A DNA stretch of 64,000 nt from Klebsormidium nitens (GCA_000708835.1 DF236974.1:112626-176625); one strand, 5' to 3'. Shown: positions 17,901 to 41,435, counted from the stretch's first letter. The notes: a model not told the origin generated them from the sequence alone. Made by a program: numbers and translations.

Positions 17901-20900
17901 CCCGCCTTACCCTCCAGAGAGGCTTGACCCCTCCAATCGTGTCAGCCCGTTCTTGCAAAGACTCTCCTGCTGGATCGCCCGACGTTTCCGCTGCTGACGT
18001 GGCACTTGCCCGGCTAACGATTCCCCTGTTCACACCAGCTTGGGGCGGGTGAAGATCAACGGGCTTAGACATCGGCGGAGCGACGAAATTGCTCAAGCCC
18101 GGTCCTGCCACACTGGGCGGAGAAGCCGGGTCCCGCGCTGCAGCTTCGTCTTTCTGTACTACGGCGTCTTGGGGCGCCGCATCGAAACCGGGGGGATGAG
18201 CAGGCGGGATTGTGGGGAGGGAAGAGCCGCGCTGATTGAGCAGTGTGAGCAACTGGCCTGAGTCGGCGGCGAGGATCAGGGAGTGCAGGGGGCATGGGGG
18301 CAGCCAGCCGTCTGCATGATGCATCTGCAAGAACGATATCACACGGGCTTATGAGAAGTCGCACAGGTTTTAAGTCCAGCATCACGCTGCAAGGCTGGAA
18401 AACCTGAAGCAAAACAAACTCTACAAGGACTGATGTTCTGAGCGGAGGACCAGTAATCGAGCGAAAACGCAGACACGGATGCAAGTCCTTCGTCGGCAAG
18501 CCTCCTCTCGAAGCAACCGACACGGACTGCAGTTTCACCACACCGCAAGAGGTGACGCGATGGGCATGCCAGGTGTCGACTCATCCGCCTCGCTTGTCTC
18601 CGGCCCCTCGGGGGGACAAGATGCTGCAGCGCTAGTCTGCACTGCATTTTGAGCTTGGATGTCGACGATGTAATCCATCCTCCGCCGTCTTTCGAGAGAT
18701 GGAACACCTCGTCGGAACAATAGTCCCTGCGTTCAAGGGGCAGGAGTGTGGGCTGACCTCGAGGTGGGGGTACAGGTGGCCCCGCTCGAGCCAGATGCGC
18801 AGGTGCTGCAGCATAAACGGCCCCGCCTCAGTGCCGTCCGCTGCTTGGTACCGCCACGCGGCCGCCTCCTCTACCTGGACACCAGACGAAGTGGTTAAGG
18901 GGTTTTTCGAAGCTTTGGGGAAACTGATGTAGCCTTCATGCAACATGGAGATGTTGGAAATCGCATGCAGGAATGTGGACCGGCGTCAGAGGCGGGACTA
19001 CAAATAAAGCTTAGAAGGTAAAGGCTCAGCGACTTGAAACTAGTTCATAACCCAGTATCTAGCTGGGCTGTGGGATAGTCCAAGCGGTCTATTGAAGGTG
19101 AGCACTGCTTTATGTCTGTCCTAGCGCCGCAACCTGGCACATTAGGTCTAGCGCGAGCAATCTGACACACACTGCAGTACACGTCTGCTGCTCAAGAGAG
19201 GTCACGAGAACTCGAACCAGCCGACTCGCAACCGGTGTTAATCATTCAGTTCCCAACTTCCGCTCAACGCTCAATCAGCCGATGCTTACCTGCTCGTGCG
19301 TCATCCCCCCTGGCTGTGGCGGGGCCCCGCCTGTCTCTGCGAACTGCTGACTAGATTCCGGCGAAACTGCACCACCTTGCGGCGCGGGCTCCGCCTTCCG
19401 TTCACTTCCGCCGCTATCTTCGTCCCGTTTCTTTCCGCTGAATTCAATCCCTTCGTAATCCTCGCTTTGTCTGGTCAGCCCGATCTTCCTCTCGTGCGTC
19501 CTGCTGACAGCCCTCGTCACGCCAGTCGCATCACCCTTCGAATTCGCAGTGTCAACCTGCTCCCTCAGCAAATCATCTTGAGTGCTCGACACTCCCCAGA
19601 CCGCCCCAGCAGGTTGCGCCTTCCCCCCATCCTCTTGCTCGCCAGCGATCTTCGCAAAGCCCTGCGCTCCATTGCCGCCACTCTGCACCGCCCCATGCCC
19701 TCCAACTACAGCGTCCTTTTCGAGCAATCGCCCCACAGCTACCTCTAACGCACTCTTTGCCAGCAGCCCCTTCAGCCAGGCCCGCCCCGCGGGCCGCTCG
19801 CCCCCCTCGTTGACACTAGGGGCCTTCTCGCTTAACTCCAACCTGGCCCCGCCAGCCGCGGTGTCAATGCTTTGGTCGGCCAGGGCCACCAACCGACTGC
19901 CAGACGACGACAATCGCTTGAGAGGTACACGTAAGCCCTCCGGCCCCTCCGTTGCGCTGCCAGGCTTCGTCGCTCTTGACAAACTCTCTTGTGGTGACTG
20001 GGCAGACCGCCAAGGAGTTGACGCTACCTCCAGTCCGTCAGATGACACGTCGGCAACGCCCAAGCCGACTAGTTCACCGGCCACTCCATAGTCTGGCGCA
20101 TCCAGGTCCTCGACAGCCGCCGGGATCTCAGGCGTAGGGGAAGGCGGGGGTGACTGAAAGACAGTTTCGCGTTCTGGGGGGGCGCAGTTTGGAGAGAGGG
20201 ACGCGCTCTCTGATCGGGAGCGCGCAGACAGCCGCACATACCGGATCGCATTACCGGGTGAATTCCCGGTCCTCAAGTACTCCACCTCCTGCAGCAATAG
20301 ATGTCAAAATCAGAGCTTTTTTGAATCTTTTTCGAATCGCGTCTCCTGGGTTTCAATTCGTGTATCTGGGCCGCCGGATCTTGCTGTTGAAATGGGTGCC
20401 GTTTACACCACAAGCGAACGGGATTTGAGATGCGGTACAGAAGTTCGAGTCAGGCTTCGGGACGGTCCCAGTAACTAGTGCAGCAACTCGCAAAAAGATG
20501 GGCACCAACATTTGGAGAATTGCAGTTCAAGGGACATTCTTGGGTGATTGCAAAGTCTCTGCTTCCGAGGAAGCAAGGCAACGCACCTCTGATCGCGTCC
20601 AATGGTACCGCAGACAGTCTTCGGCTCGCCCTTCGCACTTTCCGGCAACATAATCAAGACAAAGGTATTTCGCAGCGATCTGCGGCGGCCTGTAGAAAAG
20701 CGCACGTGTCCGATGAGGCATGTTCGTACACCATCAAATCTGCGGATGAAGCTTCCTCCGACACTCAGCGATGCAAAGCGTCTTTTTCGGGACGACTGTT
20801 TCTATCACCAAAGAATCCATTGCAGATACTTAGGAACACATGAAGATAAGTGAGGACCTGCAGGAGTCAGCGATAAAGCCAGGAAAGCTTAGCAACTGGC

Positions 20901-23900
20901 CAACTAGTGGAAGACCATTGGCCACGTGCTCAGCACACCCACCTCGCCGGGTGTCTATACGGGCACCTCAGCTTTGAGCACCGCAGCCTCAAGAACATCT
21001 CGAAACAGACTCTGTCCTCGAGTTTTCGCCCCCGCTCGGCCTGCGACGACGGCCTCTCTGCGCAGTCCTTGATCTTCTTGCGCTCCTCGTTTTGTGGCTC
21101 GTCTCGCCGCTCCTCGTCAGTTTTCTCGTGCTTCCTCTTTCGACGTTCCTCCCCGTGGTCTCGACCCCCGTCCTTACGTGCATCCGGGTCTCGCTTCCGG
21201 TACCTATCTCGGTCCTTGTCCCGGTCCCTACCCCGTTCCCCCTCTTGGTCCTTGTCCCGGTCCCTACCCCGGTCTCTCTCTCGGTCCCTCTCGCGGTCCC
21301 AATCCTGGACCCCCTCTCGGTCCTTGTCTTGGTCCCTACCCTGGTCCCCCTTGCGGTCCCTCTCTTGGTCCCTCTTTCGGTCCCTCTCACGGTTCCTCTC
21401 CCGGCCCTCGTCTCGGTCCCGGCTGCGCTTGCGGTCGGTTTCCCTGTGACGGCTCCGCTTCCTGCGCTCCTCCGGGTCTCTTGCCGACTTTGCCTCCTTC
21501 TGACGCCGCAAGTTCTCTTCCCTCCGCCTCTTTCGCTCACTATCAGTCCCACCATCTCGGCTGCCCTCACGCTTTTCCCCACCCTTCAGCTCCCCCCTGC
21601 TTTCGGCCCCAGTAGCAACCGACCCCCCTGGAAAAATGTGACCTGGCTTTTCCCTGTTACTACTGGGCCCCGGAGCGTGCCCTGACAGCGGCCGCACATC
21701 CTTCCTCGTCTCCGCCCTAACTTTTTTGCCACTTTCCGTCTTGAGAGGCTCAAGTGGATGCACCGCCTCTGCCCCGAGCACTGGACCACTTTCGACGTTT
21801 GGCCTGGACATTGAACCAGGAGAATCCATCTCCCGGCTGCGCAGTCCAAGCGTGTCCACTCCGACCTTATTTCCAGCCCCAAAATCCCCATTTTCCACTT
21901 CCGCTGTCGCCTCGACAAAAATTTCGCCTTCCCCCCCTTGCCTGGGTATTGGCTTGGGCAGCCCAAAAGGTGACGTCAGCGCCACTCCGCTTGGACCGTC
22001 TTGCCCTTCCGTCCCGTCTGCGTCCGCTTTGCATTCTGTCGGACCCGCCTCTAGTTCCCCCCGTGCCTCTTCCGCTTGCCCGTTCCTCCAGCCTTGCTTC
22101 TCCTCTCCAGTCGCCACCGCCTCTATATCCGTTTCGATCTTTAAGCCCCACTCTCTCTCTGCTCTCAGCAGTAACATTCGCCGCATACTTTCAGAAAGGA
22201 GCCGTTCCTCTACACCAGCCGCTTCATCAAGCCCGTCAGCCTTGTGAGTTTCCTCCACCGCAGGTTCGGACGGACCGTCTTCCGCTCCAGGGCCCCCGTT
22301 TTCTTGGGCTGTTTGTGCTTCCCAGGCAAAAGTGGTGTTGAGCTGCAGCACACAGACCGGAAGTTTAGAACGGAACCCCCGGAATAAGACAAAACAGCGG
22401 CAGACGTCAATTAGGAATCTGGAGATCCGACCATTCGAGGAGTTGCCGCCTAGTGGGAGGTTCCCTGCATGGGGGTCCCACTGTTCTACAAGTCTCATGA
22501 TTACGCGTCTGCATTCGAGAAACCCCAAAACGTGGATTGAACGGCCTAGCACAATCAGCAAAAACTTCGCCTGCTTGGACTTTATGGAGACTACACTGAC
22601 CAGGGCCACATACTCGGATGGTAGGCGGCAGATTGCAGATACATACGGGCTACCGAGAAGGAGTTTGTAGACATTCTTTTCTACCGCCAGGTTTGAGGAG
22701 ACAGCTAGCAAGGTGGCTGACGTGACTAAAGGGACAGCCACATACACACATTTGTGCTCATTCAAAGTCAGCAACTCACAAAAGCTTCCAAAGAGCCTGT
22801 AGTTTGTGATCCCTGTGCTGCATCCCATAATGGCTGACAACATGGCTGCTTGAGTGATTCTAACTGCTCACCTGTTCACTCCGCTCGTCCGGGTTGCCCA
22901 CAAGAAGCTGTCCTAGTTGCGCGCAGTCCAAGTCACAGTCTGGCTGCACACAGCCCTGCATGCACAATTGCCCCAACTGAATCTCTGATACAAAATGATG
23001 TACACTTACAGGACTTTCCAATGACTGTCGGGGCTCTCGACTTCAGGCTTGACAATAACTTGAAACCTTATGTGCATCATATGAAGTCATGTGCCTTGTT
23101 CTTGACGCAACCTTCTGATCTCAGAAGACTTCAAGTTCGAAAGCACAAGGCACCATATCATTCTGGCAGAACGCAGTTTGGCAAGATGAGCCAACAGTGT
23201 CACTGAGAACAACTCTGCCTGTTCTTGTGCTCACGCTTCGCAAGCTTAGACACATTTGTGACTTGCCCCACGAGTGACCTCACCTGCGACAGCCTGCACC
23301 GCTGAAGAACTGCGAACGGGCTGTTGGAGGCTCCATCAACCCGCCATTGTTCGTGAAACTTCAAAAGTTTATCCACCAGATTCTGGCGTTCGGCCCCGCA
23401 ACTATTCCCCTCAGGTATGCCATCGTTGGGATGCGTACGCCAACTGCTTTCGCCCTCAATACTGGCCAACACTGGTTCCTCAAGAGGGACCTGCGGGGGC
23501 CAAAAAAGGAAAACTTATGAGGACGCTCGCTTTCTGCAGGATTATCAGGTGGAGCTCAGCCGATCCAAGGAGGAAGAGAAGCTGTATTCTTCTGACATTC
23601 GTCAAGCAAGGAGACAGTGGCCCAAAGGATTGTTGTTGTCCCCTATGCTATCAGAAGCACAGCAGATTGACTGCAGTGGCTCATGCAGACCATAATGAAA
23701 GAAACAAAAAGTGAATTTCCCAGGCTCCAAGGATGAGTCAAAAAGAAGCCCCCATCTCTGCACTGGCTAGCCAGCCCTCAGTGTGCCCCCAAAAGTAGTC
23801 TCAGTGACTGCTGAAAGGCCCATAAACCATAAGCCCTGCTGGGATGCACACTGAAGGTGTCTAGTTAAACTGCCCCTCAGAGAAAACTCGTGAAGTGCCA

Positions 23901-33476: not shown

Positions 33477-34474
33477 CACAGGGAGGATTGGTCGTCTCCT
33501 CCCGGGGGGGAGAAGAGGGGGAGAACCGGAGGAGACATGTCTCCCCACCTGTCTCCCCCACTTCTCCCCGGGGGGAGGAGAACCGTCACTCTCCACCCCC
33601 TCTACCCCAGTGGAGGAGAATTCTCCCCCCATGATTCTCCCCCACTCCAGAAATGCTTCGCTTCTTCAAAAGTGCTTGGAGATTGTAAATACACGGACCG
33701 GGGTATGCTTGTTGAGTCCAACATGAACGGTTCTGAGTGCTCAAACCGAAAAAAAAATGGTTTCCTGCAAAAATCTACCGCTTGTCACCTGCCGGGCTCG
33801 AACCGGTGTCCTTCTGCTATTAGGTCTGCCTCCTTAACCACCTGTGCTATCTCATATGTGTGCACTCCAGAGGGGCAGCTTAAAACATATATACAGTATC
33901 ACAGAAACCATTTTCGAGATTTCCTGGTTTGCAGAGCGCTTTACGCCTCCGTAAGTCCGTTGTTCATCTTCAGAGGTTCTTCGGAAACTATATTGAAGCA
34001 CCTTTGGTATTTTCCACCTGTTTTGATCCGTTTGACATCAAGGAAACAGCCTTGCTGAGAATTCGCCGATGAAGAATTAGACAAGTGTAACATGAATGAG
34101 CGATGCAACTTTAAGGCAGATTTGTTGCTTCTAAGTAGATGGTCAGAGGACAGTACTAGATCCTTATACATCCTTTGATCATTTGTTATTCTTTAGATTC
34201 TTGTTAGATTAGCGATCGAAAGTTGCCTTCGTTTGGAGGACAGGGGGAGATCAGGGGGAGAATACTCTCCCCCTCTCGGAAAAGTGAGGGGGGAATTCTC
34301 CCCCCGTCCTCGACTGGGGGAGACATTCTCCCCCACAGTCGTCAGGTGGACGAGACCGTTCTCCGCCCCTCATGTGGGGGAGACTTCTCCCCCACCGGAG
34401 GAGAATGTAGTCTCCCCCCCCGGGGGGGAGAGAGGGGGGGGAGGAAGGGGGGGAGAAAACCAATTCTCTATGTG
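33477..34474. mobile_element. 998-bp non-autonomous DNA transposon, CACTA/CMC-like
   Basis: Termini CACAGGGAGGATTGGTCGTCTCC and (reverse complement) CACATAGAGAATTGGTTTTCTCC. 3-bp direct repeat ATG at 33474-76 and 34475-77. About seven subterminal palindromes GG(G/A)GAGA-n-TCTCCCC in 33520-33640 and 34250-34420. No transposase ORF. Confidence 0.75.
33784..33856 (-). pseudogene. tRNA-derived relic (A box, B box and T-arm kept; acceptor and anticodon stems broken)
   Basis: Minus strand TAGCACAGGTGGTTAAGG...CCGGTTCGAGCCCGG followed by T5 (33773-69) and T9 (33757-49). Not a functional tRNA by my folding. Confidence 0.5.
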
Positions 34475-34639
34475 ATGCACTGTCTTCGCTCTTTCCCTTC
34501 AAGCCTGACTGATAGACCGCCTATTAAACAGCTTCTCACTCGTCTCGAGAACTCTCACCGTGGCCTGAAAAGCCCTACCCTGTCCGCCCATGCGAACGAC
34601 GAGAGAAGCAAGTTCTTCGCTATCAAAACCAAGTATTGA

Positions 34640-35535
34640 CCTATATCCACTCACGTACGGTCTTCGACGCCCAAGCATTTTCCCGACACTCCGTTCCACT
34701 GCTCCCCCTCCTCGTCGAACGTGATCCGGAGGTTCTGGGCGATCACGATCGGGGGCAGCACGGGTCTGAAATGCTCGCCAGGTTCTCCCCGAGCCTCTCC
34801 CCCGAAATCTCTGCCTTCAGCTCAATCAGCGCGCGCGCGTAGGCCAAGTGGGCAGCTGTGTACGCGCCGCTCGTCGTCGTCTCGGCGTGGCGGATGAGCG
34901 CGTCGAGGTGCGGGTACGCGCGCCGCGCGCTGCGGCCGGAGGTGCACACCGCGCACAAGTACCGTCCCCCGGGCGGCTTCGCGTGCCCGGTTCTTGACTG
35001 AAATTCCTGCTCCAGCCTGAGCTTCTCCTCCAGTTGCATGCTGACGTCATTTGCCCCCTGAAAACCTTCCGGCTGGGACGAAGCGTCGCGTAACATTGGC
35101 CTGCGCTCTAGCCCTTCTGTGCGGGGACTTCCGATGACGTCATCTTCCACGCTGCCAGCGTCGACTTCCGTTCCCCCACTGGCTTCGCTCATGCGCTCGT
35201 CTCCCGAGTCTTGGTGGCCGCCGTCCACGAATTCGAAAGCTTCTCCACAAACTAGTTCCCTTTTGGGCGGCATCTGATCCACTCCGGTGCTGCGTTCCAC
35301 GTCTTTCAAAGAGGCGGTTCAAATCGCCCGGAAAAAGCAGCCGCAGAAGCGATTTAAATTCTTTTCCGAAGTCTCAAGAGACGCTTCTTTCCCTTACCCC
35401 TCAGGCGCAACCAGAGTCTCAGCTCCTGCTGCAATTGGCGTCACCTGCTTGGATGATTTGCGCAAGACGGGAGCTTCAATCCAGTCAATCTTGAAGACGA
35501 CGGATGCATCTGAAGATTCACATCTTCAAGTCTTT
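34640..35535 (-). pseudogene. Truncated inverted duplicate of the 5' part of the SGS3-like gene (N-terminus, zf-XS, first ~30 aa of XS)
   Basis: ORF 35309-34743 contains ASSQPEGFQGANDVSMQ and RTGHAKPPGGRYLCAVCTSGRSARRAYPHLDALIRHAETTTSG, versus the near-identical text in ORF 36183. After a frameshift it reads PPIVIAQNLRITFDEEGEQWNGVSGK and then breaks off. Carries internal deletions. Nucleotide similarity traceable to ~35535, pairing with ~36040. Confidence 0.9.
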
Positions 35536-35780: not shown

Positions 35781-36182
35781 CCTTCCGTACTTAAGTCATG
35801 CATCGTAAGGCAATCTAAATTTCGCTGGCAGATTGAGGTCTTCGCCCGGCTTAAGCGGACTGACGAAGCTGCCACGTCCTGCATGCTGCATTATCGAGAT
35901 CAGGTTAACCGGTGCAAAGTTGTCAGCGTTACATTACGGGAGCCTACTCCGTGGACAGGAAAGGAAACGCTCGTCATCCAGCGCACGAGACTTGAAGGCC
36001 TTCCTTTCATCCGGTGTTAAGAACTGAAAGCAACTTCAAAGACATGAAGCTGGGACCTGAAGTTGCATTCGCCTCTTTCAGACTCTGTCGAAGCTCCCGT
36101 CTTCCATTGGCTCTTACAATCTTCAGTTCAGGGGGTATAACAGAAGTCGTTATCAAAGCAGAAGCGTAGGGAAAGCAGAGGA

Positions 36183-39100
36183 ATGGGGGAAGGTTCAGGT
36201 TTCTTCTTGGAACCAGGAAGTCAGATTGTGGCTGCGGCTGAGGGTTCCGGGAACGAGGAGCCTCTCGAGATCATGGAACTAGACCTGAATATCGCCCCTG
36301 ATGAGGCTTTCTCCGAACAGTCGCAAGCCCCTTCTTTCAGACATGAGGACCACGCCATTAAGGTGGAGCAAATGCCTTTTAGACCGCTACCAACGTGTGA
36401 AGAAGAACTCTCAGAAGACCAGCGGGACTCCGGGGACGAGGTTAAGAACGAAAACAACGGGCAGGAAAAGATCGGAACCGGCAGGGTGAACGATGGGGAC
36501 ATCGGAGGCCCGCGCCCTGAAAGCTTAGCTTGCAACGGTATCTGCCCCGGCGCTTCTTCGCAGCCGGAAAGGTTTCAGGGCGCAAATGACGTCAGCATGC
36601 AGGTGGAGGCTCCAAAGCCAACCGCCTCACCAGCCTTCGGTCAGGTCACCGACTCGTCCACCGACTTTTCTCTCTTTCCTGAGGAAGACGTAGACAGCTC
36701 AAACTCGGAGGGCTCGGTGGAAGACGACGAGGCACCGGGGCAAGGTAATTCGTACCAGTACTGGGCGGAAAAGCTGGAGCGGGAGTGTGCGACAAGAACT
36801 GGGCACGCGAAGCCGCCCGGGGGAACGTACGGGTGCGCGGTTTGCACCTCTGGCCGCGGCGCGCGGCGCGCGTTCCCGCACCTCGACGCGCTCGTGCGCC
36901 ACGCCGAGACGACGACGAGCGGCGCGCGCGCGGCCGCCCACGTGGCCTACGCGCGCGCGCTGAACGAGCTGAAGGCGAGGCTGTCGGGAGAGAAGCCCGG
37001 GAAGCAGCTGGCGCGGCTCTCTGGCCCGGAAAAGATCGTGAAGCCCCCGATCGTGATCGCCCAGAACTTGCGAACCAAGTTCGACGAGGAGAGGAAGCAG
37101 TGGAACGGAGTGTCGGGGAAAGTGCTCGGGGCGTCCCTCCGGGCAAAAGGGTACGATGTAAAAGACCGGAACGTGAAGGATCTTTGGAACGCCGGGGGCC
37201 ACCGGGGCACCGCTTTTATTCTCTTCGAGGCGACCGAGAGGGGGCTGCTCTGCGCGAAGCAGCTCGCGGAGAGCCAGGAGCAGCGCGGCCGCGGCCGCGT
37301 CGCGTGGGAGCACGCGCGGGCGGCCGGGGCGCGGCCGCGCGAGGAGGACGGCTCGCCGCTCGCGTTCTGTTACCTCGCGACGGCCGACGATATGCGCGCG
37401 CTCGACCCGCGCGCGAAGTCGACCGGGTGGGAGGAAATCGAGCTGCAAACGCTGCTGAAGAATTCTGTACGGGAGAGGGACCAACGGCAGGAACTAGAGC
37501 TGCGGCACGCGAAGGCGCAGAGCGAGCTGCGGGCGGCGGAGGGGAAGAATCGGGAACTAGAGGGAGAGAAAATGGACCTGGCGCGGCAGAACGAGGCGCT
37601 CAGAGGGGAGGTCGAGGCGATCCGTGCGGCAACGGAAGCGGAAAATCAGGCGCACGCGCAGGAGGTGAGATGAGTCGGTGACACCTTATGGGCGTTAGGA
37701 AGCAACGGGTCCCCGGAAATTGGAGATGTTTTGCTAGATCTGAAGGGAAGATTTTACTTCGATGAGATTCCTGATGGGTCCGGAATGCGGAGTACTTCAA
37801 ACAGCATGTCATGAAAGTCTTTTGTGCTGCTCAACCTATTCCGAATCCTGAAGTTGTCGAGCCCAATTTTATAAACGGCTAGATGTTGATCTGAACGGCT
37901 CGAAACCCAGTTTGGTACGTTTTAATGCTGTGCTCCTGCCGCTGCTTGTTTGAAAGCATACATGGACAAGGACAAGCAAATCTTTGTGGTGGAAATTTGA
38001 CGACACGCTAGATTCTAGACGGGCGGACGAATAGACGGGACGGGCGCTGAGTTCAATCGTCTAAAAGCTTGTAGGAGACATAACGTTTCTTGCTGAATGC
38101 GGATTCTGTGGAAGAATAGAAAAACCTTGGTCAGTGTCATCTTTTGGGTTTGAATTTAGTTAATGCAAATGCAGTCTTGACGGGCATTCTGCAGCTACAA
38201 ACACGGTCGTTCTCAGTCGAAACTTCTTCAAATCACCGAGGCCTCCTGATTGACGTGCGCCACGTGTCTCTGTCGGGTCCAGATGCTCCGCCAGGTGGAG
38301 GAGCTGCAGGGCGCGCTCGCGGAGGAGGCGCTCGAAGCGAAGGCGGCCGCGGACGCGGATCGCGCCGACATGAGCCGACGACTGCGGGAGCTCCAGCCGG
38401 GCGGTCAGGAATCCAAGATAGACGAGGCAGGAGACTTCGACAGGTAAGTCTTCGCGGCAACTAAGCCATGCGCATGAATCTGGTTGTGTCATTCAACAAG
38501 CCTTTTCTTTGCGTCATTGCATGAATTCGGCTTAAGCCAGACGAAGAGCATTTTCACTTGATGAGAATGTCTGTGAGCAAGCGGATAGCGGGCAGCTTGC
38601 TCAAATGTTCTCATTTCTGGACTGTTCTGGCAGAGGCGCCTTTCGATCTCAAGTCGTTTTATTGGGACGTTCATCTGATGGATTTTGGAGGGAAGATGCA
38701 GTTTTTAAACTCCTCCAGTCATCGCTGTCCCGCTGGCTCGCACGTCATAATCCGTTGACCAGATGCACTTGCGGCTCGCATCGGCAAGCACTGAATTCGT
38801 TGCCTTCTGCTAAAGGTCTTGTCCCGTATTCGACAAAGCTTCAAGAACTATTCTGCTCATCACCATCACTATGTTCCCAAACCCTAAGCAAACCTTCAGT
38901 AACACATCCGCTTGCGAAAGAGTGCACCTAAGCACAACGCAAAACCAGCTTTTATGCATGGCGACGACCGCTCCCTTCGGTGACGTGCAGTGCCCACGAG
39001 CAGCTGTCAAAGATAGTTGAGGACAGCTTTCAGAAGCTGGACATCGCATACAACGACCAGGAAGTCGCCTCGTTCGTCAGCCTGCGGAGCGCCTTTGATC

Positions 39101-40683
39101 AGACCAGAGTGCAGATGCGAAGGTAAGGCTCCGGGCCGTGCTCGTCGCTGATGTTCAACACGATTCCCGAGCTGGTTCTCTTTAAATTCCTTGCTTGGCT
39201 TCTTCAATTGGACCTTGAGTTGAATCTTTGTTGACCAAGGAACGGTTCAAGAGCGGGTGGTATTCGCTAAAAGAGCATCAGCTGACTTCGAGGTACAATC
39301 TACATGGGCAGGGGTGGATCTCTCTCGATCTGTATGTCGAGAACTCCTCAGGGCTAATCCCCTTTGAGCAAGCTATACTTCTGGCTTTCCGGTTCCCTGT
39401 CAATGCAGGGACTGAGATTCCGGCGGAATCCATTGGTCTTTTTGTCTACGCCTTTTGCCCTGCTTTTGCTCTTTACGCGACGTGGGGGTTCAGATTAATC
39501 CATTTCCAAGTTTTGCAAACTGCAGTGACTTTAGCAACAAGCAAGGGTTTTCGCAACGGAAGACTTTCTGACTAGTCTGAAAACGCATCCGCTTCTTGGC
39601 TCTTTGCAGGGTGCGCGAGGAGAACCGCCGCGCGGTTATGAGGGAATTCGAGCAGAAGCTGCGCGAGGTGGCGGAGCAGGCTGTGCGCGCGCGCGCGGAG
39701 AGCGAGCGGCTTCGGGAGGAGCGGAACGAACTAGACAACCGGAGGAACCAGCAAGGGGTGAGCGGAGGGCACGATCAGTAACCGAAGATGCGCGTCTGGA
39801 GTCTCTTAGGTTAACCGTCTGACCCGACTCGAATCTGTGGTCCGAGATGTTGCTAGGCCTTCGTTGTCCGAGAATAGTCCCAGCCTAGGTCGCGTTCCAG
39901 GTAGGCATGGTCTTGGTTCTGAAGAATTGATTTCTGTTCCAATGTCGAGATTTGCTTCGAACAGAAGTGCGGGTGCTTTCAAGCTTTGTCCAACGAAACC
40001 TTGAATATCCCACGAGAGTGTTGTTTCCGTCAGTCGAGACGCCAGCTGAGGTTTGATCTTCAGCCTAGAAATCATCAAACCATTGAGCTTGATCATGGTC
40101 TGCGACGTGCGCACATGATCAGTAGACAACATTTTTCGGAAAGGTAGGGAAGGTATGAAAGCGGACCGCGCTCCTTTGAGAGCTGCTGAGGCCGGGACGT
40201 TGGCACGTTTTAAACGACAGGGATCCCGAGGTAGACCCCGCGCGTTTGACATAGGAGTTTTGGCTGCTAACTAGGCCGATCACCAGATTCAAGGCTCATC
40301 TTTGACCTTGTTATAAGGCTGGCGACCGCCCGACTCTGGTTATCGAACATAGCACTCTCCAACGGTCAACCTGCCCTTAATGGCCCATACCATCCATAAT
40401 TATGGGCCAGAGCATCCTATCAATGTCGCCCGACCGACGAAGCTTTCGTGTGCAGGCGCCCGAGTGCATCGTGTGCTCCGAGGAGTGGAGCGACAGCGTC
40501 AAGCGGTTCCAGTTCGACTGCGGGCACGCGGTCATCTGCGAGAAATGCTGCGAGAAGTATATCGCGACAGAGGAGGCCAAAATGGGCAAAACTCGCGGCC
40601 GGAAGCAGCACAAGCTCATGTGTCCCATGGGCACCTGCGACCTCCGAAAGAACAAGAGGTTCAAGCCCGCATACCTGGGATGA
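36183..40683 (+). CDS. SGS3-like protein: acidic disordered N-terminus, zf-XS, XS domain, coiled coil, C-terminal RING-HC; ~716 aa, 5 exons
   Basis: Exons 36183-37664, 38283-38443, 38991-39122, 39610-39757, 40456-40683 (phases 0,2,2,0). zf-XS CAVC..H..H. XS motifs IVKPPIVIAQN, WNGVSGKVL, GGHRGTAFILFE, GRVAW, FCYLATADDM parallel SGS3 IVWPPMVIIMN, WLGMGNQEL, GHRGMSVLMFE, DRIAW, YGFLATKQDL. RING CIVC..CGHAVICEKC..CPMGTC. No XH domain seen. Confidence 0.88.
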
Positions 40684-41435
40684 CGGAAAGGGTCCGTGTA
40701 AACGCTTAAATTTGGAGACACGAAGTCGAGGAGGGAGAGGACTAAAAGTTGGTCTCAGCTTGTCAACTCTTGCCGCTTTGACAAATCAAGCGCCGACTGC
40801 CGCCTCGAGTGTATGTACGGCTGATCACTGGTGCATGGTAGAGCTCTTGGGCGCCTGGCAGCCGGCGCAGATCGCATAGTGGCACGGACTTTACCTTCCA
40901 GCAAAAGGAACGAATATAAGAGTACTTTAAGTTTTGTTTGATTGCGAAAAGCATACAAATACCCCACAAAATAGGACGACGTGGGCTGATTTAGTGAACA
41001 TCTGTACTGATCGATCAACCGCTTTGAACACGCGTAATGCTTAAGTCAATGTCGTGCTGAATCTGCCGCAGATACAGTCAACCGCCCAAAAATATAGCCC
41101 TTAAGACGCAAACTAGCGAGCCGATGTTGGACTCCGGGACATGCGCCCTATACTCGAGGACGGCTCGTGCCAATCAATGAGCCCCCTTATGACGAGGATG
41201 TTCATGCATGCGCCAATGTCCTGCATTCGTTCGGCCGCCCAATACATACAATCTATCGCTTACACCGTCCACTACGGTTCCCACACAACAATCGATATAC
41301 ATACATACATCACATCTGTACTCAAATGATCGCATGTAGACAGCCTAGATGCACATTACGAATTGAGTTCGCGCGACATCACATGCATGTGCCCTGTTAT
41401 TCATGCAAGCTTACGGTCAAGGCTGGATGCTAGGG

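Follow-up and report, generated by a model that had tools for sequence, protein, structure and literature searches.

Do any of the XS proteins of plants carry an enzymatic domain? XS proteins of the SGS3/IDN2 type are central to plant secondary small interfering RNA (siRNA) production and to RNA-directed DNA methylation, and the family is treated as a set of non-enzymatic scaffolds. The question is raised by a gene of the charophyte alga Klebsormidium nitens that lies on the plus strand at 36183-40683 of a 64,000-nucleotide stretch of DNA (GCA_000708835.1 DF236974.1:112626-176625; hereafter the window, from whose first nucleotide all positions are counted) and that had been predicted, from the DNA alone, to encode an SGS3-like zf-XS/XS/coiled-coil protein ending in a RING finger. 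We found that XS and RING are indeed joined in this one gene and that related fusions occur in other streptophytes; in the most economical reading, its modular 716-residue product is an algal member of an XS-coiled-coil-RING family and probably acts as an RNA-tethered RING-type ubiquitin ligase (E3).

Gene structure and domains of the K. nitens protein

The gene model comprises five plus-strand exons, all with GT-AG introns between them and with consistent phases, which give an open reading frame (ORF) of 2151 nucleotides. Its 716-residue translation is identical, letter for letter, to an annotated K. nitens "XS domain-containing protein" (P0001); the public annotation already includes the RING exon, about which the protein name is silent. 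Exon 1 (36183-37664, residues 1-494, with its GT donor at 37665) encodes an acidic low-complexity N-terminus, a zf-XS-like zinc finger, the XS domain, and the first part of the helical region, and exon 2 (38283-38443, residues 495-547 plus two nucleotides) encodes the end of the first helix and a hinge. The second helix, with the motif QEVASFV, is encoded by exon 3 (38991-39122, residues 548-592), its continuation into the RING by exon 4 (39610-39757, residues 592-641), and the RING-HC with a basic/aromatic tail ending in NKRFKPAYLG by exon 5 (40456-40683, residues 642-716 plus the stop codon). GC content was 0.55-0.70 in exons versus 0.47-0.52 in introns. When the exon-4 donor is left unused, the frame stops after seven codons (39758-39781), and a RING-less, SGS3-like isoform could therefore arise by intron retention or early polyadenylation. 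The order of domains in the full-length protein is thus acidic N-terminus, zf-XS, XS, two long helices, C3HC4 RING, and a tail of 14 residues.

Residues 1-195 are acidic and of low complexity (41 Asp/Glu versus 10 Lys/Arg). The XS domain (37029-37397, residues 283-405) matched Pfam PF03468 with an E-value of 1.6e-15 and 57.8 bits (cutoff 25), in keeping with its description as intact in the original prediction; the solved XS structure of IDN2 (4E8U) was its only sequence match in the PDB, and a weak one (E 0.019). The zinc finger immediately upstream (36834-36941, residues 218-253) had likewise been called intact, but XS was the only Pfam match at E<=1 in the exon-1 translation and PF03470 (zf-XS) went unmatched. 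Because Pfam missed this finger, we relied on alignment with canonical SGS3 homologs, among them Hibiscus SGS3 (P0016), which itself matches Pfam zf-XS. In this alignment, the presumptive ligands Cys218, Cys221, His240 (within RHAET), and His253, together with a G.GA motif, fall in register with the canonical SGS3 pattern CPAC...GPGA...HAKT...H. Judged by this register, a zf-XS zinc finger is present but divergent.

AlphaFold modeling of residues 405-716 with eight homologs predicted long helices at residues 415-531 and 542-640, a low-confidence hinge between them, and a small zinc domain after the second helix. QEVASFV occupies residues 571-577 of helix 2, a C-terminal helical region in which canonical SGS3 homologs have a motif of the type EE[IV]xxFI; the motif is short, however, and is unconserved in the two Klebsormidium relatives described below. 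In an AlphaFold model with a predicted local distance difference test score (pLDDT) of 83.6, a long helix leads straight into a RING fold.

The terminal RING-HC, as the prediction had it, lies wholly within exon 5 (40465-40638, Cys645-Cys702). All eight zinc ligands are intact in the spacing C645-x2-C-x15-C-x-H-x3-C-x2-C-x23-C-x4-C702, and the protein ends 14 residues later. When a nine-sequence profile of the family was compared with the PDB, the RING of TRIM32 was the best match (E 2.9e-7), followed by those of RNF13, MGRN1, MEX3C, RNF38, and inhibitor-of-apoptosis proteins (IAPs). The top Foldseek matches to the model were all RINGs, and the 50 listed were almost all RINGs, the exceptions being a few lower-ranked zinc fingers of the FYVE and LIM types; probabilities for the RING matches reached 0.99, but their E-values were weak (E>=0.016). 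The best fold matches were TRIM32, RNF8 (whose 110 aligned columns take in the helix), Bre1, RNF4, and IDOL, and TRAF6 was also among the matches listed. An ESM Atlas feature search with the RING part returned RING families throughout, with scores <=0.88 that mark them as leads only. In RNF8, Bre1/RNF20, TRIM32, RNF4, and IAPs, as in the K. nitens protein, the RING follows directly on a helix and sits at or near the C-terminus, and the short tail carries an aromatic residue. The RING is closest in type to these coiled-coil or dimeric RINGs (TRIM32, RNF8, RNF4) and not to RING1 of RBR ligases.

The RBR comparison had been drawn from ligand spacing. That spacing is real: like RING1 of HHARI/ARIH1, the K. 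nitens domain has CGH..C..C, a Cx4C last pair, and a long loop before it. The likeness nevertheless proved superficial. HHARI RING1 was 23rd in the Foldseek ranking (27% identity over 60 columns), no RBR protein appeared among the PDB profile matches, and the RBR-like spacing is missing from family members outside Klebsormidium. RBR ligases, moreover, have a RING1-IBR-RING2 triad, whereas translations of the K. nitens exons had no Pfam IBR match, and a stop codon conserved in relatives follows 14 codons past the last cysteine. With no IBR or RING2, a spacing confined to Klebsormidium, and better matches to TRIM32, RNF8, and RNF4, we rejected the RBR RING1 assignment.

A family of XS-coiled-coil-RING proteins in streptophytes

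Two environmental contigs from relatives of Klebsormidium (L001 and L002) carry all five exons in order. Their nucleotide similarity to the K. nitens gene is confined to exons 1, 2, 3, and 5 (exon 4 was recovered as protein only) and ends 2-7 nucleotides from the end of exon 1, the end of exon 3, and the start of exon 5. Both contigs conserve the acceptor of the RING exon (tgtgcag followed by GC) and the stop codon after ...YLG. L001 and L002 are ~85% identical to each other through introns and ~95% identical in the single stretch of exon 1 examined.

More distant relatives surfaced only in an exhaustive HMMER search and with a family profile. Word-index searches with the RING tail (residues 636-716) returned only the query protein itself, and those with zf-XS/XS returned only Klebsormidium-like sequences. 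The HMMER search, over 1.84 billion representatives, gave 62 hits, of which four from outside Klebsormidium were collinear with the query from XS to RING (for example, query residues 283-676 on P0008 and 281-710 on P0014). Pfam confirmed both XS and RING in all four (P0008, P0010, P0014, and P0040). Two of them are already annotated, as KAJ7548047.1 in Diphasiastrum complanatum and as XP_024525141.1 in Selaginella moellendorffii, the latter with a near-identical cluster member named "SGS3 homolog". P0014 derives from 2.0-kb transcript-like contigs with a single ORF; a full-length comparison of its sequence with a protein of Adiantum capillus-veneris gave 61% identity. The 32 cluster members of P0008 come from single-ORF contigs of 2.3-2.8 kb, and the XS domain of P0008 is closest to the Ginkgo fragment Gb_10240. 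The organisms behind P0014 and P0008 are assigned only from these nearest named relatives. Searching with the family profile extended the set by another Diphasiastrum locus, members from two species of Adiantum, and further transcript contigs. The collinear members now include two Selaginella proteins (XP_024525141.1 / XP_024519004.1; XP_002979112 in PMC5907777), two Diphasiastrum loci, proteins from two Adiantum species (among them the product of A. capillus-veneris GOP47_0012056), and fern-like and gymnosperm-like transcripts. The searches retrieved no member from angiosperms, mosses, or other charophytes, an absence that the limits of the search leave unestablished.

These proteins share much with the algal one. 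In lycophytes and ferns, an XS domain is followed, collinearly, by ~200-230 helical residues, a C3HC4 RING, and a basic/aromatic tail; the XS domains have the same one-residue indel relative to SGS3 and the same EDG before the last strand. Across nine family members, seven zinc ligands are invariant, the RINGs share the signature EC..C..E[WF][SG]...R..[FY]..C.HA..C..C, and the proteins always end 10-16 residues past the last cysteine, after a basic stretch and with an aromatic residue two or three positions from the end (three in the short basic tail of the K. nitens protein). There are also differences. The lycophyte and fern proteins are without zf-XS and without a long acidic N-terminus, and their XS domains retain IVWPP. 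Klebsormidium RING copies have a Cx3-4C last pair and a long loop, whereas fern, lycophyte, and gymnosperm-like homologs have an ordinary CPxC, preceded in lycophytes and ferns by a short loop. Within the XS-RING set, the Klebsormidium protein alone combines zf-XS, a hallmark of SGS3, with a RING.

The fusion family is old within streptophytes, spanning K. nitens, lycophytes, ferns, and a gymnosperm-like lineage, and the algal fusion is not unique. XS-RING fusions proved fairly widespread in non-flowering streptophytes and are on record in public databases, yet they are essentially undescribed. In full-text literature searches, the family was unnamed, unsurveyed, and without functional characterization, and PMC5907777 was the only source to mention an XS protein with a C-terminal RING, in a single-sentence remark on Selaginella. 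What is new here is the algal member and its retained zf-XS; the annotated gene and the remark on Selaginella (PMC5907777) were already known.

Other unusual XS proteins came to light in the same material. In a Chara braunii model (P0052, GBG78421.1), XS is fused to reverse-transcriptase domains, probably as a chimera created by annotation. A Logan contig encodes a protein of 859 residues with three tandem zf-XS/XS units (P0013).

A candidate RNA-tethered ubiquitin ligase

What might such a protein do? In SGS3 and IDN2, XS and zf-XS bind duplex RNA with 5' overhangs. In dimeric RINGs such as those of RNF8, Bre1, TRIM32, RNF4, IAPs, and MDM2, the C-terminal aromatic residue of one protomer helps to hold the ubiquitin-charged conjugating enzyme (E2~ubiquitin) of the other. 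By analogy, the two long helices of the K. nitens protein would dimerize it and pair two RINGs, in the manner of RNF8, Bre1, and TRIM ligases; the paired RINGs would recruit E2~ubiquitin; the XS and zf-XS modules would bind RNA; and proteins on the bound RNA would be ubiquitinated. An RNA-binding domain and a RING also share one chain in MEX3C, Roquin, and CNOT4, which have KH, ROQ, or classical RRM domains in place of XS/zf-XS; the homology of the K. nitens protein to both the dimeric and the RNA-binding RING ligases is limited to the RING. Like these animal proteins, the candidate ligase could target proteins that sit on aberrant or viral RNA. The original prediction offered ribosomes, AGO, or viral proteins as putative targets and a possible tie to siRNA bodies. 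The span of the conserved XS-RING branch, with a charophyte alga at one end and ferns and a gymnosperm-like lineage at the other, suggests such an RNA-tethered ligase, a predicted role for an architecture that has been remarked on once and a gene that is already annotated. K. nitens can be cultured and transformed, and these questions are therefore open to experiment.

Several observations weigh against this reading. The near-invariant Trp of IVWPP is Lys in the K. nitens protein, as the prediction had noted: its XS domain begins IVKPP, whereas every other aligned XS protein has IVWPP except the two Klebsormidium relatives (VVPP and VAPP), and the domain may be altered. All Pfam RING models scored below their gathering cutoffs (the best, zf-C3HC4_3, with 21.9 versus 27 bits). 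Active RINGs reportedly tend, from work on RNF4 and BIRC7, to carry a basic or polar "linchpin" (Arg, Lys, or Asn) after the last ligand, a position taken by Asp703 in the query and by Asp in Klebsormidium XS-RING copies; the residue is Asn or Ala in two coiled-coil-RING paralogs and Lys, Arg, or Asn in fern, lycophyte, and gymnosperm-like members. Evolution of the RING exon is roughly twofold faster than that of the XS exon, with ratios of nonsynonymous to synonymous substitution (dN/dS) of 0.47-0.49 versus 0.24-0.27. In L001, the second zinc ligand of the RING (L001:14754-14951) is changed from Cys to Arg (CIFR), and L002 carries a one-nucleotide deletion in exon 1 just before zf-XS (~9925); these two changes are either real decay or assembly errors. 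RNA coverage consists of two short contigs (270 and 235 nucleotides), both on exon 1, and no read from four sequencing runs placed on 35900-41100 spans any splice junction. A search of sequencing runs found two with 5-6% of the sampled words, and the RNA status of the runs used for junctions is itself a guess; the run data speak neither for nor against the last exon.

Asp703, the higher dN/dS of the RING exon, the ligand change in L001, and the deletion in L002 together make a serious rival of the idea that the RING has degenerated into a non-catalytic zinc module for dimerization or protein binding, and that the protein is a scaffold that binds RNA as SGS3 and IDN2 do and has no ligase activity. 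The sub-threshold Pfam scores, the unusual Cx4C last pair, and the 23-residue loop point the same way. We judge this alternative possible but clearly the less probable of the two, on four counts. First, all eight zinc ligands are intact in K. nitens. Second, positions of the type that contact E2 enzymes (a hydrophobic residue between the first and second cysteines, an aromatic residue four or five positions past ligand 6, and a proline past ligand 7) are kept in algae, lycophytes, and ferns and also in the gymnosperm-like form. Third, the conserved aromatic tail is a feature of the type used by active dimeric RINGs. Finally, its persistence for several hundred million years speaks for a function that has been maintained. 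An RNA-binding E3 therefore continues to be our preferred reading of the K. nitens protein.

Relation to SGS3 and neighboring copies

How does this protein stand to SGS3 itself? Both have a disordered N-terminus followed by zf-XS, XS, and a coiled coil in that order, and the zf-XS ligands and the XS core can be aligned. SGS3 ends after the coiled coil and has a prion-like N-terminus, whereas the K. nitens protein adds a RING, has an acidic N-terminus, and has Lys for Trp in the WPP motif. That SGS3 is without a terminal RING agreed with a regular-expression scan of 63 retrieved proteins, in which no canonical SGS3-clade homolog had one (Pfam was run on only a few). IDN2/FDM proteins (zf-XS-XS-coiled coil-XH) share zf-XS, XS, and a dimerizing coiled coil with the algal protein at very low sequence similarity, but they end in XH and not in a RING; no exon translation of the K. 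nitens gene had a Pfam match to XH.

In a maximum-likelihood tree of XS domains, from which the canonical SGS3-like sequence of K. nitens was left out, a branch with support of 98/95 parts two groups. The first consists of 33 canonical SGS3-type rows; the second takes in the query and all RING-bearing proteins, together with XS-only proteins from liverworts and some XS proteins from angiosperms. The phylogeny thus sets the query outside the canonical SGS3 clade but does not place it further: the backbone of the second group is a polytomy in which the Klebsormidium clade has no resolved position, which also tempers our reading. Constraining all RING-bearing XS proteins to one clade raised the log-likelihood (lnL) by 5.3 over the free-search tree (approximately unbiased, AU, test, p = 0.63). 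Because the one-clade tree is the likelier, a single origin of the XS-RING fusion that includes Klebsormidium is the best-fitting, though not a proven, account of these sequences.

The liverwort proteins (P0095-P0098 and P0027, from Marchantia, Riccia, and Calypogeia) are 580-625 residues long, with XS at the extreme C-terminus and no RING, and they nest beside the lycophyte XS-RING proteins in the XS tree. This pattern may reflect loss of the RING or domain reshuffling.

With both zf-XS and RING, the algal member is a useful anchor for tracing the origin of the family's architectures. One scenario, which we regard as speculative and rather unlikely, is that zf-XS-XS-coiled coil-RING was the ancestral streptophyte architecture, and that canonical SGS3 arose from it when the RING was lost, and the XS-RING proteins of land plants when zf-XS was lost. 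If so, the SGS3 lineage would have begun as an RNA-tethered ubiquitin ligase, RNA-guided ubiquitination would once have been part of streptophyte RNA silencing, and a ubiquitination step would still be at work in algae, lycophytes, ferns, and gymnosperms. The lack of a retrieved angiosperm member would then point to loss in that lineage, although absence there is not established.

It is improbable that the gene is simply Klebsormidium's own working SGS3, which partners RDR6 in making secondary siRNAs, with an acquired RING. The SGS3 order of zf-XS, XS, and coiled coil and the EE[IV]xxF[IV]-like helix motif fit this idea; K. nitens has RDR6 (bioRxiv 10.1101/2022.01.18.476847); and a tree in which Klebsormidium is constrained to join the canonical SGS3 clade costs 9 lnL and is not rejected (AU p = 0.31). 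The alga, however, expresses a separate canonical SGS3-like protein: its transcript GBSO01024386 encodes a canonical IVWPP XS domain and a different zf-XS and is not the query (PMC5907777, Fig. S5), and its SGS3-like gene is listed as GAQ92898 (PMC5907777). By accession order, the query gene should be GAQ791xx and not GAQ92898, we infer, since a neighboring gene, KFL_000250240, is GAQ79147. The XS domain of the query, moreover, lies outside the canonical clade, the best-likelihood tree places it with RING-bearing proteins, and its identity is 25-28% to SGS3 homologs versus 26-32% to XS-RING proteins. The query is a paralog, not an ortholog, of the alga's canonical SGS3-like gene, and its identification with SGS3 is not supported.

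That the XS-coiled-coil gene stops short of 40456 and the RING exon forms a small gene of its own, as the want of a read across the exon 4/5 junction, an in-frame ATG 54 nucleotides upstream of exon 5 (ORF 40402-40683), the RING-less isoform possible from the stop seven codons past exon 4, and K. nitens RING-tail proteins without XS (P0012 and P0038) might suggest, is very improbable, because conservation in L001 and L002 covers the exons and begins at the acceptor (40449) and not at the ATG, the exon phases fit, and homologous RINGs stand in the same collinear XS-helix-RING order in uninterrupted ORFs and annotated proteins of four other lineages.

Partial copies of the gene occur nearby and elsewhere. 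Head-to-head with it on the minus strand lies a partial inverted duplicate (34254-35426) of the N-terminus, zf-XS, and the start of XS; where it is homologous to P0001, stop codons and a frameshift interrupt it, and the duplicate is annotated as a two-exon protein of 247 residues (P0005; exons 35273-34746 and 34466-34254). A paralog, KFL_000250240 (P0012; 14985-16992, minus strand), has four exons and encodes 272 residues with a coiled coil, the same RING, and the tail ...KPVYLG, and no XS. In L002, a second copy of the RING tail lies upstream on the opposite strand (4247-4041, minus), from which the neighborhood seems partly conserved.

Elsewhere in the genome, KFL_003220020 (P0038) encodes a coiled-coil-RING-tail protein without XS, and KFL_002920135 (P0006) is a truncated zf-XS/XS paralog that is 47% identical to the query. 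Within the window, a minus-strand ORF at 18632-18946, outside the annotated KFL_000250240, contains a GYF-domain-like stretch (W.Y...G...GPF....L..W...G). A long minus-strand ORF at 20930-22843 has Arg/Asp/Glu-rich RD/RE repeats and a C-terminal Cys/His cluster like a CCCH zinc finger, and it may encode a splicing or RNA-binding factor.

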